A stretch of 64,000 nt of DNA from sequence record NC_019401.1; one strand, given 5' to 3'. Positions 3,515-57,481 of the stretch are shown in pieces. Each line of letters opens with the position of its first letter. The stretch's first letter is position 1. The notes under the pieces were generated by a model. The model saw nothing but the letters and a program-made list of their open reading frames with translations, was not told where the DNA came from and did no database searches. The translations under genes and the position numbers were made by a program.

Positions 3515-3918
3515 TGAGTAACCTACGAAAATTAATGGAATCTATTGACGACATTTATGAAGCAGATGATGAGTCAATGGAACAAGAAACTGAACAATCT
3601 GCACCTGAACTATTAAAAGAAATCATCGGTTCACTAAAAGAACTTTCTGGCATGATTGCTGATGGCTCAGTTGAAGATTTAACTACAATAACTTCTGATT
3701 TAAAAAATATCTCTGCATCCCTTAAAGAACTTGTTGGTTCTGATGGTGATGACTTCGAATTCAACACTGATGAAGAATCCGATGAACCAGAAGAAGAATT
3801 AGAAGAAGAATATGGTGCAGAAGGTATGGGTCCATCTTTTGATGCTAATGGCACTCAAAATTACGAAAATCCACAAGGCTCATCATATCCTGAACAAAAA
3901 GGTTTTGTGGGAATTTAA
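3514..3918 (+). CDS. Acidic hypothetical protein (putative internal head protein)
   Basis: 134-aa ORF coupled to the upstream stop (TAATG); GGAGG upstream. Confidence 0.8.
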   Translation: MSNLRKLMESIDDIYEADDESMEQETEQSAPELLKEIIGSLKELSGMIADGSVEDLTTITSDLKNISASLKELVGSDGDDFEFNTDEESDEPEEELEEEYGAEGMGPSFDANGTQNYENPQGSSYPEQKGFVGI

Positions 3919-3921
3919 TAA

Positions 3922-4296
3922 ATGATACCAAAAACCAACAGTACTGAATATCATTATCAGGTATTAAAATCAATCAAGGAAGTTCACGAATTTAATTCTG
4001 ATCTTTCTGATAGAATGATTTTTATGTCGATCTTTGATAATTACAGAACTGGTGGTGGTCTAAGATTAAGTAAGCTGGGGTATCAAATTTGTAATGACAA
4101 TTCTTTATATGATTTTGCCCCAATTCCTTTCAAAAAGACGGATCGTAATTCAAACGTTTATACATCATTAGACCGGATTTGCACCACTCCATACTATGTT
4201 GATGGAGATACTTTGTACTTATCAGATGATTTAGTAATCGCACAACTAACGTTTTGCAGCGATGACTTTGCTAAATTGTTTGCTGCATTTTTATGA
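3922..4296 (+). CDS. Hypothetical protein
   Basis: 124-aa ORF tightly packed in the operon; normal composition. Confidence 0.75.
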   Translation: MIPKTNSTEYHYQVLKSIKEVHEFNSDLSDRMIFMSIFDNYRTGGGLRLSKLGYQICNDNSLYDFAPIPFKKTDRNSNVYTSLDRICTTPYYVDGDTLYLSDDLVIAQLTFCSDDFAKLFAAFL

Positions 4297-4322
4297 AACG
4301 TCAAAAAAAATTGTGGTATAAT
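4294..4322 (+). promoter_or_regulatory. Early/middle-type promoter TGAAAC-N17-TATAAT with extended -10 (TGG)
   Basis: TGAAAC 4294-4299 and TATAAT 4317-4322; the same architecture occurs at five other sites. Confidence 0.8.
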
Positions 4323-4354
4323 AGCATTGTTAATAGATAAATGGATACAATAGA

Positions 4355-4385
4355 AAAGCACTGAATGTTCAGTGCTTTCTTTTTT
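4355..4385 (+). terminator. Intrinsic terminator
   Basis: AAAGCACTGA-ATGT-TCAGTGCTTT followed by CTTTTTT. Confidence 0.75.
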
Positions 4386-4436
4386 CAAACGGATTTGTTA
4401 GTAATTCAATTATAACTAAAGTGTAAAGAGAGATGT

Positions 4437-5780
4437 ATGAGTGAAGTAACTAAAGAAGTACAAGATATTCTAAGCTATAATCTAAAACCTCTACAAGTAG
4501 TGGAAGCAATGTCCGTTGCAGATGCAGTTCGAGATAGCTTAATGATTTGGGGTTCACCTGGTATCGGCAAATCCGCAATCGCATTACAATATGCCAATGA
4601 CAACTATCCACTTCGTAAAGATAATGTGGGTAAGTTACAATATCTCCTACAACGTGCACAAGACCCTGAAGATTCTCTTGTAACTATGGAAGATTATCAT
4701 AATTTTAGTTGTTCACTACTAGATCAAGAAACTAACTTTATTGATTTCCGTTTATCACAGATTGAACCTTCAGACCTTCGTGGCATTCCAATTCCAGTAA
4801 AAATGTTTTATGATGAAAATGGAACCCAAATTAGTGAATCAGAAATTCACCTATATCCAGGATACATCGAAGAAACAGGCGTAGTATGGGCTTCTCCAAA
4901 CATTCTTAAACTTCCAAAAGATTGGAAAGGTGTAATTCTGTTTGATGAAATCAACTCAGCAATGCCAATTGTACAAGCTGCATCCTATCAGTTGATTCTT
5001 GACCGCCGTGTAGGTGAGCTAGTACTTCCAGAGAATGCACTAATTCTTGCTGCGGGTAACCGTGAAACTGATGGTGGTGTAACATTCAGTCTAGCGACTC
5101 CACTACGTGACCGTATGACTCACATTGAAATGGTTCCTGATTACAATGACTGGATTGAAAATTATGCTATTCCTAATATGCTAAATCCAGGTACAATTGC
5201 ATTTATCAAACAAACTGGCTCCCGTTTGTTTAACACATTAAGTCCAAAAGATGCAAGTCATTCTGGTGGTTCTTCTCCACGTTCTTGGACTCGTGTTTCA
5301 GATATTGAAAATGTTCGTAAGAAAAAAGGTATGTCCTCTGCGGTATATAAAGCACTAATTGCTGGTCGTGTGGGTAGTACTGCTGGTATTGAGTATACTA
5401 CTTATATTGAAAATATGGCTGACTTGCCTGATGTTATGGATATTCTTAATGGTATCGTAACTGATTTTAGTGAACATAAACAAGAAGTTTCTAAAAACTA
5501 CTTTATTACTATCAGTCTAACTCAAAAAATTATTGAATTTGGTCGTTCACGAAATGAACGAAAGGCAATTATCACTGATGAAGAATGGTGCAAGTACTGT
5601 AGTAACTTTATTGAGTTTATTGACAGTCAATTTGCAAAAGAACAATCAGAACTTATTGTCCATGCAATCCGTACTCTTACCGATGCTGGAATTAACATCA
5701 CGTATAGTGAAGTGCCAAAATTCAAAGACTTTGTTCGTAAATACGGACCACTTCTACGTAAAGCACGTCAGATGAAGTAA
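4437..5780 (+). CDS. MoxR-family AAA+ ATPase
   Basis: Walker A GSPGIGKS, Walker B ILFDEIN, sensor LAAGN, PLRDR arginine-finger region; VWA gene adjacent. Confidence 0.88.
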   Translation: MSEVTKEVQDILSYNLKPLQVVEAMSVADAVRDSLMIWGSPGIGKSAIALQYANDNYPLRKDNVGKLQYLLQRAQDPEDSLVTMEDYHNFSCSLLDQETNFIDFRLSQIEPSDLRGIPIPVKMFYDENGTQISESEIHLYPGYIEETGVVWASPNILKLPKDWKGVILFDEINSAMPIVQAASYQLILDRRVGELVLPENALILAAGNRETDGGVTFSLATPLRDRMTHIEMVPDYNDWIENYAIPNMLNPGTIAFIKQTGSRLFNTLSPKDASHSGGSSPRSWTRVSDIENVRKKKGMSSAVYKALIAGRVGSTAGIEYTTYIENMADLPDVMDILNGIVTDFSEHKQEVSKNYFITISLTQKIIEFGRSRNERKAIITDEEWCKYCSNFIEFIDSQFAKEQSELIVHAIRTLTDAGINITYSEVPKFKDFVRKYGPLLRKARQMK

Positions 5781-48854: not shown

Positions 48855-49715
48855 ATGGCAATTAAACCAAAACGCAAGAAGTACTTGAACAATGCGGATT
48901 TGCTAAGAGAAATTCACATCAGTAAAATGTCATATTGTTGGGTTCTAGACGATGCTTACAGTATGTATGATTATATCGTCTTTGACGAATCCGAAATTAC
49001 TGAAGAATTACTTGAACTGGCAGCACTAGAGCGAATCAAACGCTTAAATTCCAGTACTTTAGATAAAATACGTGCAGAACATGCTTTCACTGCCAAGAAA
49101 GCTAAAGAATATGCTGAAGAACAAAGTCTTTTTCTACATGATGTTCCTCTAGATGAGGTTGTTATTCGAGTTATTACGAATGAACACATTCCTTTCATCG
49201 AAGGTTCTAATGGAGAGAAAAAAGTTCGTACCATTTTTGAACCATTCAAGCATTACATCGTAGATAGTACTGGTGAACTTTATGAAGTTGCTAGGTCACA
49301 TTGGCGTGGTAATTTGGAAAATGGGGAATTTAGCCAAAATCATGGCAGACAAACTAATGAACTAGGTAAAATGTTCATTAAACTTGCTGAAGAAATTTCA
49401 CATAAGCCTAATTATCGAAATTATACGTACTTAGATGAAATGATGGGTGATGCTAGAATACAATTAGTCAAGAATGCACTACTATTCAATGAAAGTATCT
49501 TGTACAAAAAGGTAAAACCAGCAGTTCAGCTTAATCCTTTCGCATATTATACTTCGTTTGTCAACAATGCGTTCCGTTCAGTACTTAATGCTGAAAAGAA
49601 TGTACGTAACATCCGTGATGACTTATTAGAATTACAGGGTTTTAACCCAAGTCATACAAGACAAATCGAAATTGAAATGAAAATGCTAGAAAGGAAGCAA
49701 AATGGCACTATTTGA
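48855..49715 (+). CDS. Late-transcription sigma factor (T4 gp55-like)
   Basis: YLNNADLL.EI; LG.MF.K.AE..S.KPNY.NYTY.DEM; NPFAYYT..VNNAF motifs; adjacent to gp47/gp46 as in T4. Confidence 0.9.
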   Translation: MAIKPKRKKYLNNADLLREIHISKMSYCWVLDDAYSMYDYIVFDESEITEELLELAALERIKRLNSSTLDKIRAEHAFTAKKAKEYAEEQSLFLHDVPLDEVVIRVITNEHIPFIEGSNGEKKVRTIFEPFKHYIVDSTGELYEVARSHWRGNLENGEFSQNHGRQTNELGKMFIKLAEEISHKPNYRNYTYLDEMMGDARIQLVKNALLFNESILYKKVKPAVQLNPFAYYTSFVNNAFRSVLNAEKNVRNIRDDLLELQGFNPSHTRQIEIEMKMLERKQNGTI

Positions 49716-53396: not shown

Positions 53397-53436
53397 AGAT
53401 ACCCCAATAACGATTCCATGTAGTATTTAATAATTT

Positions 53437-53465
53437 TGGAACATTAATGAAAATTGTGGTATAAT
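53437..53465 (+). promoter_or_regulatory. Early/middle-type promoter TGGAAC-N17-TATAAT with no downstream protein gene
   Basis: TGGAAC 53437-53442 and TGTGGTATAAT 53455-53465. Confidence 0.8.
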
Positions 53466-53471
53466 ATGTTA

Positions 53472-54195
53472 GTAAAACCCTGCTTGGCGGTACGAAAGTA
53501 CTGACAAAATAAACCTGATCCTATCGAAAATGTAGATGGCAGATGAGAAGTTCAAGCAGTTCGCAGTGCAGAAGACACCCGTTAGGAGATGGCATAGTTT
53601 GTACCACCCACGGCAATACGGCACTATAAAGAAGTACACTAGACTGATAGTACTTCCTCGATAGATATATAGGTTCGCACCCTACCAATAAGTTAAGGGA
53701 GTTTATCTGGATGATAAATTTTGCGATCAATTTTTATACAATATTGATCCGTCCAAATTTCCAGATGAATAGGTACTGAGTTTGATTGTATAGACTTAGT
53801 GCTGAGTGTGGTTAGCCCACGACCGTTACTATATGAACTGCGATAGAGAGAAACAGAGTAACCCGCTTTCGTTCTACCTTGTAGAAATTCGCAATACAAT
53901 GAATCGACGACTATCATCGTCAGATATAAATCAGTACTTTAAATAGTACTTTTTTACGCCTTCATTCCCCTGCGGGGGGATGATAGAATCTCTACAAATC
54001 TCGTCAGTAATAAATGTGTTTAACGTAACAGTACAACAGATAGATAATTGAATTGAGTTGTTTCAGTACAAACGAAGTGCAGTACAGAACAACGAAAATT
54101 CTTTGACATTCGAAGAATGGCAAATCTCAATCATTCAGTACAGTTAGAACAGTTAAGAATTTTAGACACAAAAAAAACCAGCACTAAGGCTGGTT
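53472..54195 (+). ncRNA. Candidate large structured non-coding RNA (unknown family); alternatively an origin/primer transcript
   Basis: ~730 nt without a credible ORF in an otherwise densely coding genome; own promoter; at least 10 stems, a GAAA tetraloop and G-U pairs on the + strand; terminator-like hairpins at 53933-53955 and 54176-54195. Confidence 0.65.
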
Positions 54196-54196
54196 C
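54170..54196. terminator. Intrinsic terminator (clear for the - strand, weaker U-tract for +)
   Basis: A8-AACCAGC-ACTAAG-GCTGGTT-CTT. Confidence 0.75.
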
Positions 54197-54200
54197 TTAA

Positions 54201-54377
54201 TTATTTCTTATTTTCCTTTTTGACCTTCTTGTTATATTGCTTCACCAACAGGTCACGGTCAGTCACAGGCATATTGAGTAGCATCTCATAGCTAGTATTC
54301 TCAATGTATACAGAAACCTCCATTAATCCACTTTTAATATCTTCACAGTTCAAACGAAGGTCTGCGATTTCCTGCAT
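54201..54377 (-). CDS. gp51-like baseplate hub / tail assembly chaperone extension (58 aa; absent from the ORF track)
   Basis: My translation: MQEIADLRLNCEDIKSGLMEVSVYIENTSYEMLLNMPVTDRDLLVKQYNKKVKKENKK; LLNMP..DR resembles gp51-type proteins; frame open back to the slippery site. Confidence 0.7.
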   Translation of the reverse strand: MQEIADLRLNCEDIKSGLMEVSVYIENTSYEMLLNMPVTDRDLLVKQYNKKVKKENKK

Positions 54378-54397
54378 AATTTCTTCAGGACTAGAAA

Positions 54398-55255
54398 TTA
54401 GAAGCTTTGTACGAAAAAATTGCTAGGATCAAATTGTAGATTTTCAAGTGTCCATTCATGACCACAGCTTGAACATCCTACTTCCATCTCATGACTCACA
54501 CCAACATTATTAATAAAATCGCTTTTTTCACGAATTTGTTTTAAAATAAATGCTGGCTGTTCACCTAACCATTCTGCAATAAATTCACGTTCAGTAATTT
54601 TAGTACCATCTACAGTTTCAACACTTTCAATGTTTGCTACAATCATTTCAAAGCTAAGTTTTGTCATTGATTCAAAAATAGTACTGAAATGTTCCATTTT
54701 TTCCTCATCACTCATATCTTCTAAATCTTCAAGCATACGTGCTTTCTTTTGTTCTTGGAACATTCTTTGACCGAATGCGGAATATTCTTCCCAAGTATGT
54801 GGTTTGAATTTCAAAAGCAATCCACCAACTTCTTCTAGAAGTAATTCAGGTTGTTCTTCAAGAAGCTCAGCACTATCAAGTAAGAATTGTAGGTCACGTT
54901 CAAAAGCACCATGATGACCACATTCAGGACAATCAACTTCAATATGATATTCACGTTCTTTTGTTGCTAATTTAATTCCGATAAGTAAAAGTTCTACATC
55001 TGGAACATATAACTTACGAGCATCTTCAATATTAGGAACGCAGTTTTCAATAACACTTGCAACTGCTTCACCATTCATTAGTGCATCTGGATTATTAAAC
55101 ATTAATTCATCACGTGCTGAACGTGCACAAATACCACATTCAACTGTATCATTCACTAAAACACCTGAAGGATATTTGATTACATCATTACTTATCAACT
55201 TAGTATAAAGTACTTCAACTTTTGTATACTTTGACAAAGGGTTCATCTTATTCAT
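54398..55255 (-). CDS. Baseplate hub assembly protein (T4 gp26-like)
   Basis: SARDEL....PDAL..G.A...VI..C.P, D...LL..I..AT, CP.CG and C..CG motifs; ends NFF. Confidence 0.8.
   Translation of the reverse strand: MNKMNPLSKYTKVEVLYTKLISNDVIKYPSGVLVNDTVECGICARSARDELMFNNPDALMNGEAVASVIENCVPNIEDARKLYVPDVELLLIGIKLATKEREYHIEVDCPECGHHGAFERDLQFLLDSAELLEEQPELLLEEVGGLLLKFKPHTWEEYSAFGQRMFQEQKKARMLEDLEDMSDEEKMEHFSTIFESMTKLSFEMIVANIESVETVDGTKITEREFIAEWLGEQPAFILKQIREKSDFINNVGVSHEMEVGCSSCGHEWTLENLQFDPSNFFVQSF
54413..54419 (-). other. Predicted -1 programmed frameshift site (U UUU UUC)
   Basis: Heptamer at the N-F-F codons of the gp26-like gene; the -1 frame reads FFRTKLLISSPEEIMQE... into the 54201-54377 ORF. 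Confidence 0.6.
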
Positions 55256-55266
55256 ATCGACTCCAT

Positions 55267-55307
55267 AATAAATACGACTATACTATATTTTGTATTAGTT
55301 ATTTATA
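55267..55307. promoter_or_regulatory. Face-to-face late promoters for the gp26-like (-) and tape measure (+) genes
   Basis: AATAAATA on + at 55267-55274 and TATAAATA on - at 55300-55307. Confidence 0.7.
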
Positions 55308-55318
55308 AGGAAAATCAC

Positions 55319-57481
55319 ATGGCAGGATTAGGCTCTGATTACATTCAACAACAATTGTTGGATCAAAGTGTTGCTATGAATGATAATTTAAGTGCGATGC
55401 GTACCATACTTCTTGATATAGAGAAGAATACTAAAAATGGAAGTGGTTCAGGCGGATCAGGTGGTGGAAGTGGTAACCCAGGAAACCGCGACCGTGATCG
55501 TCGTGGCGGTGGTAATGGTGGAAATCCATTCAAGGATGCATTTAAAGATTTATTCGGCGAAGTAAACAATGTGAGTAGAACTATTTTAGGTAATAATGGT
55601 TCCATTCAGAATACCGTAGGTGCACTATCAACCTCTGCTGGTGCATTACGATCTACTTTCAGTAAATTACCTGGCCCGATTGGATTAGCAGCAAATGCAT
55701 TTTTAGGCATTGTTGAAGTTGGTGGTAAAGTATACGAGTACTTGAACGAACAATTAAACATGTATAATCAAATAAACAGTGCTGGTATTTCGTTAGCAGA
55801 TGGTATGTTAACTGTACGTAAAGGTTCCGGTGCTGCATTCATGAGTATTAATGAATTCAGTGCAGCTATTTCAAAGAACAGTGATGCTCTTGCTGCAATG
55901 GAAGGTCAGTACGGTGATGGTGTAGAACACTTTGGTAAATTACTAAATACCGTCCAACTTACTCAAGAAAAACTTGGATTATACGGTGTATCGGCACAAC
56001 AATTGGCTGATATTACTGCTAAAAACTACAAATTCGAAAGAATGTATTCCGGTCAACAACAGATTCGGAATATGAATGAGGCACAAAGTACTACTTCGTT
56101 TGTTCAACAAATGACTTACTTGAGTAAGACTGTAGGTAAAAGTGTAGACGAACTTATTTCTAAATTTGCCAATATGGGTGATAATTTAGATTCAAACACT
56201 GCAATAGATGCGTTACAGAATAACTTTGGTTTATCTGAATCAAAAGCTTCTGAAGTAACTAAATCTATGAACTCGATATTTGCAAGTATGGGTGCTGCTG
56301 GGGAAACTTTACAAAAGTTAAACTCAAGTAAATTAGCAGATAACATGCTACCGGAAGAATTTAACAATCAGTTTACTCAATTATATACAGACAAGTTAAG
56401 AGAATTACAAGCAGCCGGAATTACTGATGAAAAAGTTCTTCGTAGAGCAATGTCTCAGTACGTTAAAGAACATGAAGGGCAATTGCAAACAGAAATTCAG
56501 GCACAGCGTCGTATTGGTAACGTGGCGGCAGCACAATGGTTGTCACAATTAAAAAATATTGAACGAGTATTAAACGACCCTAAAAATCAGCCAAGCCCAA
56601 TTATTGAATCATTTACTAACCGATTTAATTTATGGATAGGTAAAACATTTACTGAACCATTTAATAAATTTTATACTGAAACGGCTGAGAAAGCAGCGAC
56701 ATATCTATCTAATCTGGCAGATAACAGTACTGATGCATGGGATTTCATGTCTAAATTAACTACTGATGCATTTACTAAATTTAATGCAGGTATGCTTGGG
56801 CCATTTGGTGCGTTAGCTAATATTCCAAATAGACTTATGGAATCTATTTTCGGTGAAAGTTGGAATAAAGTAGCTGATGCGTTTGGTAATTTAGCGGGTG
56901 ATATTGTCCAGATTCCTATTCGTTTAGGAAAATTGATTTGGGAAATGTTTACTGGATCAGAATCTGAAGTAGATGCTGCTGGCAAAGAATTAATGGGTTC
57001 CATTAAGAGAATATTCAAGGATGTTATTGGTGTATTCACTAAGATTGGTAGTTTAAGTATCAATTTTGATGATGTTAAGAAAGGATTCACTGAAGCAATT
57101 GAATCTTTAAAGAATAAGTTCACTAATTTGTGGAGTAGGATTAAAAACTGGTGGTCAGATTCATCTGATGAAGAACCAGAATCAAAACAAAGTCCATCTT
57201 CACCACCAGTAACCCCTACGCCAACGGCTAGTCAGCCAAAAACCGCAGGTGTTCAGAAAGTCACTGCTCCACCAGAGTATACTAAGCCTGAAAAAATTGA
57301 GCAAGCAGAACAAACCGCACCTCAAGAAATTCAGACTGCACAAAATAACTCAAATGAAGGTATGAATAAGCTTCTTCAGGCAATACTAAATAACCTAGAA
57401 GCTCAATCACAGAATAATAGCCAAGCCGCTATTATCTTACGTCAGATAGCTGAGAATACTGAACCACCTCGAAATGTATAA
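55319..57481 (+). CDS. Tape measure / baseplate hub protein (gp29-like)
   Basis: 720 aa, helical and A/G/S/L-rich, with F/W-spaced repeats and a P/Q-rich tail; next to the gp26-like chaperone and portal. Confidence 0.65.
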   Translation: MAGLGSDYIQQQLLDQSVAMNDNLSAMRTILLDIEKNTKNGSGSGGSGGGSGNPGNRDRDRRGGGNGGNPFKDAFKDLFGEVNNVSRTILGNNGSIQNTVGALSTSAGALRSTFSKLPGPIGLAANAFLGIVEVGGKVYEYLNEQLNMYNQINSAGISLADGMLTVRKGSGAAFMSINEFSAAISKNSDALAAMEGQYGDGVEHFGKLLNTVQLTQEKLGLYGVSAQQLADITAKNYKFERMYSGQQQIRNMNEAQSTTSFVQQMTYLSKTVGKSVDELISKFANMGDNLDSNTAIDALQNNFGLSESKASEVTKSMNSIFASMGAAGETLQKLNSSKLADNMLPEEFNNQFTQLYTDKLRELQAAGITDEKVLRRAMSQYVKEHEGQLQTEIQAQRRIGNVAAAQWLSQLKNIERVLNDPKNQPSPIIESFTNRFNLWIGKTFTEPFNKFYTETAEKAATYLSNLADNSTDAWDFMSKLTTDAFTKFNAGMLGPFGALANIPNRLMESIFGESWNKVADAFGNLAGDIVQIPIRLGKLIWEMFTGSESEVDAAGKELMGSIKRIFKDVIGVFTKIGSLSINFDDVKKGFTEAIESLKNKFTNLWSRIKNWWSDSSDEEPESKQSPSSPPVTPTPTASQPKTAGVQKVTAPPEYTKPEKIEQAEQTAPQEIQTAQNNSNEGMNKLLQAILNNLEAQSQNNSQAAIILRQIAENTEPPRNV

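Follow-up and report, generated by a model that had tools for sequence, protein, structure and literature searches.

The window analysed here is a stretch of 64,000 nucleotides (nt) from the genome of the Cronobacter jumbo myovirus vB_CsaM_GAP32 (358.7 kb, NC_019401); all coordinates below are window coordinates, which equal the record coordinates minus 124000. The segment 53900-55500 shows 100% identity to this phage. We report on the 3´ end of the gp26-like gene GAP32_243, where a slippery heptamer is followed by a -1 frame that stays open through the small open reading frame (ORF) GAP32_242 (Table 1). An earlier reading of this sequence, here called the original prediction, had proposed that a -1 frameshift fuses the two ORFs and that the products form a chaperone pair.

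Table 1. Features at the GAP32_243 locus, in window coordinates
Feature	Position	Strand	Remarks
gp26-like gene GAP32_243	54398..55255	-	285 amino acids (aa), zero-frame product; annotated "hypothetical protein"
Slippery heptamer T TTT TTC	54413..54419	-	X XXY YYZ register; proposed site of tandem tRNA-Phe -1 slippage
-1-frame extension	54201..54413	-	70 sense codons and stop; contains GAP32_242
GAP32_242	54201-54377	-	58 aa; annotated "hypothetical protein"; lies inside the -1-frame extension
8-bp AU-rich inverted repeat	54377..54400	-	12 nt after the heptamer; probably not a stimulator
Intrinsic-terminator-like hairpin and T run	54173..54198	-	directly 3´ of the -1 ORF stop
T4-type late-promoter motif TATAAATA	55300..55307	-	45 nt upstream of the gp26-like ATG
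GAP32_244, divergent neighbour	55319..57481	+	720-aa virion structural protein; phrog_14121

The slippery site and the open -1 frame

The zero-frame codons at the site are AAT TTT TTC, followed by four sense codons and the TAA at 54400-54398. Therefore, T TTT TTC lies in the X XXY YYZ register, five codons upstream of the GAP32_243 stop, which confirms this part of the original prediction. Read in the -1 frame, the sequence contains no stop between 54422 and a TAA at 54203-54201; the ATG at 54377 lies within this stretch. The expected fusion of about 351 aa was borne out by arithmetic, with 281 zero-frame and 70 minus-one-frame residues adding up to 351 aa. In E. coli, heptamers of the type H_HH.U_UU.Y rank with those that shift most readily, and insertion sequence (IS) elements make use of U_UU.U_UU.C (PMC4066793).

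The product of GAP32_243 contains the PF12322 domain ("T4_baseplate") with 78.7 bits against a cut-off of 24.5 (E 6.5e-22), a domain carried by all of its homologues (98/98), and it also matches phrog_150 ("baseplate hub"). PF12322 was the sole family found in Pfam and NCBIfam scans, which gave no Phage_TAC match. The AlphaFold2 (AF2) model of the protein has a predicted local distance difference test score (pLDDT) of 88.8 and a predicted template modelling score (pTM) of 0.85; it is disordered at residues 279-285, where the slip site and the zero-frame tail lie. No relative was found in the PDB by sequence or by fold (best Foldseek E 0.34), and the search of BFVD gave 74 fold matches at E <= 0.001. 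Among the 50 BFVD matches listed, which come from many myovirus groups, those with a name are almost all a baseplate hub, a hub assembly protein or a chaperone, and none is a tail chaperone. When the extension was modelled alone, AF2 predicted a short linker and three helices (pLDDT 86.8), for which the PDB contained no match by sequence or fold; the extension matches phrog_18291, a family of unknown function, and this is the only match of GAP32_242.

The gp26-like protein also has three CxxC pairs. Automatic annotation has given homologues wrong names (heavy-metal P-type ATPase, ribosomal protein S27E, Mu Com, glutaredoxin), presumably because of the CxxC zinc-ribbon motifs; this includes the gp26-like gene of Yersinia phage fHe-Yen9-04 (1201-2076 of its locus sequence).

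A stimulator, i.e. a structure 5-9 nt downstream or a Shine-Dalgarno-like (SD-like) sequence upstream of the heptamer, is usual at such sites but not obligatory. An 8-bp hairpin 12 nt downstream had been proposed for this role, and the inverted repeat is indeed present (arms 54400-54393 and 54384-54377, 8-nt loop, 12-nt spacer); the zero-frame stop forms the start of the 5´ arm, and the last base of the 3´ arm is the first of the ATG at 54377. The role itself is not supported: the repeat is AU-rich, it shows no extra stability against shuffled sequence (z = +0.15 to +0.57), it is poorly kept, being intact only in the closest relative CBB, and covariation was not found. In nine close relatives no conserved structure was detected (GAP32 hairpin 73.6% paired, no covariation beyond that of shuffles), and the consensus fold energy was -0.8 kcal/mol. 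A stable hairpin 6-8 nt downstream (z below -2) occurred in only 5 of 29 lineages, and a search of Rfam returned no known RNA family at the site.

Conservation of the site across relatives

Conservation of the heptamer and of the open -1 frame had been suggested as a check of the frameshift, and both are conserved. All named relatives have the heptamer in register inside an open -1 zone (21/21), with a -1 ORF that continues 57-75 codons beyond the zero-frame stop; they comprise Mimasvirus, Eneladusvirus, Asteriusvirus, Alcyoneusvirus, XaC1, a Vibrio jumbo phage, Atu_ph07, PA5oct, Phosso, SCTP-2 and Xoo-sp13. A pattern search of IMG/VR combined with protein alignment yielded 68 jumbo-phage loci with identity down to 24%, and in each of the 67 that could be evaluated the in-register heptamer and the -1 ORF were found (67/67). 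In the evaluable cyanomyovirus loci from IMG/VR, TTTTTTC is located ten nucleotides before the stop in 78/78, and the codon before the site ends in T throughout, across both Ser families (AGT, TCT). Over these three sets of loci the -1 ORF has a length of 54-79 codons. Heptamer and -1 ORF are likewise present in the Aeromonas phages Aeh1 and AsFcp_4 (Straboviridae), in Stenotrophomonas phage BUCT608 and in the Kyanoviridae phage C48C1. A tblastn search with the Aeromonas extension gave matches where gp26 ends in phages 65, PX29 and phiAS5, in Cronobacter phage S13, in a pelagimyophage and in Prochlorococcus phages. The gp26 gene of cyanophage S-BM1 has the same terminal heptamer and a 62-codon -1 ORF, part of which is annotated as "gp51".

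For the non-cyanophage loci we could compare 70 distinct junctions, of which 61 have TTTTTTC, 8 TTTTTTT and 1 AAATTTT. The zero-frame tail after the site is 1-11 codons long, compared to 69-79 codons for the extension. The first -1 codon encodes Arg in 59/70 junctions, and columns 4 and 5 of the extension are Leu in 65/70 and 62/70, respectively. When the sequences were grouped into 24 clusters (<50% protein identity), the joint probability of NNT-TTT being kept in every one of them, with the amino acids taken as given, was about 1e-9.4, so the heptamer is conserved beyond chance. As a control we used T4-type gp26 genes, which occur together with a separate gp51 gene, and these do not keep the heptamer.

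The coding periodicity changes from the zero frame to the -1 frame at the heptamer. Before the heptamer, the per-site entropy for the three codon positions of the zero frame is 0.62/0.57/1.06 bits, and directly after it the values for the -1 frame are 0.70/0.60/1.13 bits. Possible start codons are not conserved. The -1 ORF of PA5oct contains no ATG, GTG or TTG over its whole length, and in RaK2 the first possible start codon is found 71 nt past the zero-frame stop. The first possible start is located >12 codons into the conserved extension in 35/70 junctions and >25 codons in 13/70. Since start codons are missing in PA5oct and lie far inside the extension in RaK2 and in these 13 junctions, independent initiation cannot be the general route to the extension.

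Among the lineages seen, only that of Vibrio phage K474 (OZ195913, 2402-3405 of its locus sequence) lacks the heptamer; it encodes Leu-Phe there (CTT TTT GCG), still has a -1 ORF of 60 codons and has ATG codons overlapping the stop, which suggests that the small ORF is either a free-standing protein or is reached by a single-tRNA slip on U_UUU. The contig L042 (IMGVR_UViG_3300020576_007305, ~2320-2345) has the variant A AAT TTT with a five-T run at the homologous position; this is one metagenomic contig, and the run may contain a homopolymer sequencing error. In the Escherichia phage CMSTMSU (MH494197, UNVERIFIED_ORG), the gp26-like gene is annotated as two pieces owing to one frame break, which is probably an assembly error rather than biology.

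A joined coding sequence (CDS) is marked in none of the annotated phage records examined. In-frame long forms of the Rak2-like clade were found neither among the 98 homologues nor among 1.84 billion representatives. We found no published report and no database record of this frameshift, in a literature search that extended to journals without subscription.

Relationship to gp26 and gp51 of T4

T4 is the reference model for contractile-tail assembly, and the roles of gp26 and gp51 in the hub have stayed obscure. Leiman et al. count both among the hub assembly chaperones and note that particles do not contain gp51 (PMC3004832). In T4 (NC_000866), gene 26 (3803-4429 of the locus sequence, minus strand, 208 aa) and gene 51 (4480-5229 of the locus sequence, plus strand, 249 aa) are adjacent and divergent. 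PF12322 is found in gp26 (E 8.8e-64) and in residues 1-201 of gp51 (E 3.9e-52), with an end-to-end match to the domain in both, therefore gp51 is a paralogue of gp26. A direct BLASTP comparison of the two proteins gave 2e-6, and gp51 has ~48 extra in-frame residues at its C-terminus. In the literature covered, we found no paper stating this paralogy. The -1 frame of T4 gene 26 closes at once, gene 25 is next, and the Phe-Phe of gene 26 is coded TTC TTT. Across T4-type gp26 genes the Phe-Phe itself is not kept, with Phe-Ile and Leu-Phe occurring as well.

A hidden Markov model (HMM) built from the cyanophage -1 extensions alone matched residues ~207-251 in 14/14 T4-type gp51 proteins (E 2e-8 to 6e-4) and nothing else in the loci of these proteins. 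The hhalign probability for cyanophage extensions against the gp51 tail was 95.9%, and the extension of C48C1 aligned to T4 gp51 residues 204-247 (BLASTP E 1e-6). Judged from these alignments, the homology of the gp51 tail to the cyanophage -1 extension is statistically solid. Thus, gp51 is the in-frame equivalent of the proposed frameshift product, and T4 gp26 is the equivalent of the short form. Since gp51 is a gp26 paralogue with a homologous tail, T4 has two genes for the short and the long form. The in-frame gp51 was found in 1380 phage records, which are T-even-like Straboviridae throughout.

The original prediction had called the 58-aa ORF of GAP32 gp51-like. This has to be corrected, as the ORF has no likeness to the whole of gp51 and at best resembles its last ~45 residues. 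With a pooled HMM bridging the GAP32-type extension to the gp51 tail, the true extensions came first among 2015 six-frame ORFs and the matches were collinear, but with E 0.13 or worse. That GAP32-type extensions are homologous to the tail of gp51, as argued from position, length and frame, is therefore best described as suggestive. An alignment of whole T4 gp51 with a profile of 39 extensions was discarded (hhalign 7.7%, aligned to the wrong region). For the body of the protein, hhalign of the gp26-like profile against single T4 sequences was weak, but the link through Pfam holds.

Virion data are available for two relatives. The mass spectrometry (MS) table of the CBB virion goes from CBB_247 straight to CBB_251 (PMC5259590). 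In PA5oct, the gp26-like homologue is not flagged as MS-detected and its neighbour is.

Proposed model, rival explanations and genomic context

Taken together, the comparative data make it highly probable that GAP32_243, a member of the gp26/gp51 family, yields a short and a long form by -1 slippage which match T4 gp26 and gp51. In this model, GAP32_243 would be a baseplate-hub assembly chaperone. Most ribosomes would stop five codons past U UUU UUC and release the 285-aa short form, while a minority would slip back one base on the heptamer, with both Phe-tRNAs re-pairing, and read 70 more codons in the -1 frame to give the 351-aa long form. Both forms would share the folded body containing the zinc ribbon, and the long form would in addition carry the short linker and the small three-helix domain. 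The short form would be the counterpart of T4 gp26 and the long form that of T4 gp51, and both might act together in hub assembly as lambda G and GT do on the tail. The slippery site, the open frame, their conservation, the frame-specific switch of constraint and the relationship to gp51 are direct results of this analysis; from them we infer a ribosomal mechanism of slippage, its use by a minority of ribosomes and the cooperation of both forms in hub assembly. As regards the frameshift near the end of the gp26-like gene and the long form in the role of gp51, the original prediction of a chaperone pair is strongly supported by the comparison of relatives and by the T4 relationship.

Several points weigh against this model. 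The support for the frameshift is comparative throughout, neither a conserved downstream structure nor an upstream SD-like stimulator was found, and hhalign of the GAP32-type extension against the gp51 tail gave a weak 9.5-17%. The GAP32 extension has an ATG 13 codons in with a weak purine-rich stretch before it, so that independent initiation there is possible, and in K474, which has no heptamer and has ATG codons over the stop, the extension may be free-standing.

These last two points would suit an ordinary separate gene, in which no fusion is made and translation of GAP32_242 starts at its own ATG or depends on termination-reinitiation coupling. In many relatives an ATG shares 1 or 4 nt with the stop, and the database entries are all separate short ORFs. 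However, the starts are not conserved, as described above for PA5oct, RaK2 and the 13 junctions, and the heptamer, which precedes any start, is the point from which amino acids are conserved and codon periodicity is seen. A separate gene would also leave the fixed synonymous positions of the heptamer unexplained, and T4 gp51 is an example of a tail that functions in one chain with a gp26-like body, so we regard this explanation as very unlikely. It might also be that the slippage is transcriptional and the RNA polymerase adds one U in the T6 run, which would give the same long protein. The site is a homopolymer (T6, and T7 in 8 junctions), and the protein outcome would be indistinguishable. 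Six T are, however, short for efficient polymerase slippage, and base 7 is C in 61/70 junctions, although the conserved Arg codon of the -1 frame also explains this C. The L042 variant argues against transcriptional slippage as well, because X XXY YYZ is kept there with only five T. We consider a transcriptional origin unlikely.

The heptamer could finally be a coincidence, i.e. a by-product of a conserved Phe-Phe with an unrelated ORF downstream. Phe-Phe is invariant in the frameshift-type proteins, and in these AT-rich genomes Phe is mostly encoded by TTT (71%). The joint probability calculated for the synonymous sites, the constancy of the relative frame and of the extension length while the spacing varies, and the T4-type gp26 genes, with their unconserved Phe-Phe coded TTC TTT, all speak against it, and we judge such a coincidence to be extremely improbable. 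The frameshift model remains our preferred explanation.

The heptamer with its -1 ORF was seen in Rak2-like jumbo phages, PA5oct, Atu_ph07, cyanomyoviruses, a pelagimyophage and Aeh1-type Straboviridae. We lean slightly towards the view that a programmed -1 frameshift in this gene is ancestral and still prevalent across the T4 superfamily, and that the T-even lineage replaced it by a duplication, with gene 26 for the short and gene 51 for the in-frame long form. If the frameshift model is true, it means an unannotated recoding event in hundreds of genomes, including marine cyanophages and jumbo phages that are candidates for therapy, and the small ORFs now called "hypothetical protein" or "gp51" would have to be regarded as the C-terminal domain of a longer product. 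The model would also imply a clean natural exchange between fixed-ratio recoding with two products and two paralogous genes, and the function of the gp51 tail would become directly addressable.

To our knowledge, no counterpart of the frameshifted chaperone pair of most long-tailed phages has been recognised in T4-like phages. Xu, Hendrix and Duda reportedly showed in 2004 that the -1 frameshift is conserved among tail assembly chaperones. The part of a 2016 review on recoding covered here describes lambda gpG/gpGT and the conserved -1 frameshift in tail assembly chaperones, and phage T4 appears in that part only for the gene 60 bypass (PMC5009743). The original prediction had assigned the GAP32 pair to this G/GT-type family, an assignment that fails by sequence, by fold and by gene order; what the two systems share is their logic and not their protein family. 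In the G/GT type, the tape measure is bound by the part present in both products and the tube protein by the extension, and the products are required for assembly but do not remain in the virion. As in lambda, one gene has a heptamer near its 3´ end and encodes a shared N-terminal body, GAP32 would make mostly the short form and, less often, a long form gaining a small domain, and the products would serve the assembly of a tail machine, the T4 counterpart gp51 being absent from particles. In contrast to lambda, the GAP32 family is an unrelated one (PF12322) with a fold that has no solved relative, the solved chaperones included, the gene does not sit between those for the tube and the tape measure, its heptamer reads U UUU UUC instead of G GGA AAG, and the T4 counterparts act in hub assembly.

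T4 itself shares with GAP32 the PF12322 family and the logic of a short and a long form, with gp51 consisting of domain and tail. It differs in using two divergent paralogous genes without recoding, gene 26 having no heptamer and being followed by gene 25, and the GAP32 body is ~80 residues longer than that of the T4 counterparts. In phage P2, gpE/gpE+E' is the tail chaperone of a myovirus made by -1 frameshift. This is again a contractile-tail phage in which a -1 slip between overlapping frames yields two products, but the P2 proteins belong to another family and their gene adjoins the tape-measure gene.

The neighbour of GAP32_243 had been taken for the tape-measure gene. GAP32_244 matches phrog_167 (tape measure) at E 0.028 only, BLASTP against T4 gp29 gave E 0.26, and its homologues are annotated as tape measure in some relatives; a tape-measure identity is unproven. 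This putative tape-measure gene is transcribed divergently, and the placement between tube and tape-measure genes is thus not found in GAP32. GAP32_244 is an abundant, major virion protein, and 29 peptides of its CBB homologue were detected in virion MS (PMC5259590). In other lineages the gene downstream is gp5-like, a peptidase or unknown. Only in Aeh1, AsFcp_4 and C48C1 was a tube-family gene (gp54 or 'tail tube') located directly upstream of gp26 on the same strand, an order closer to the classical tube-chaperone order than that of GAP32.

The terminator-like hairpin downstream of the -1 ORF closes the transcription unit. The motif TATAAATA, present in 5 copies within the window, would by its resemblance to T4 late promoters serve as a promoter upstream of GAP32_243; a gene for a gp55-like late sigma factor, GAP32_238 (48855-49715, plus strand), is also located within the window. 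Between the terminator and the endonuclease VII gene lies a gene-free stretch of ~780 nt (53397-54172), and no tRNA was found in this gap downstream of the -1 ORF. It contains the sequence TGTACTG four times within 114 nt (54029-54142, minus strand), and the whole window contains 15 copies compared to 11.5 expected.
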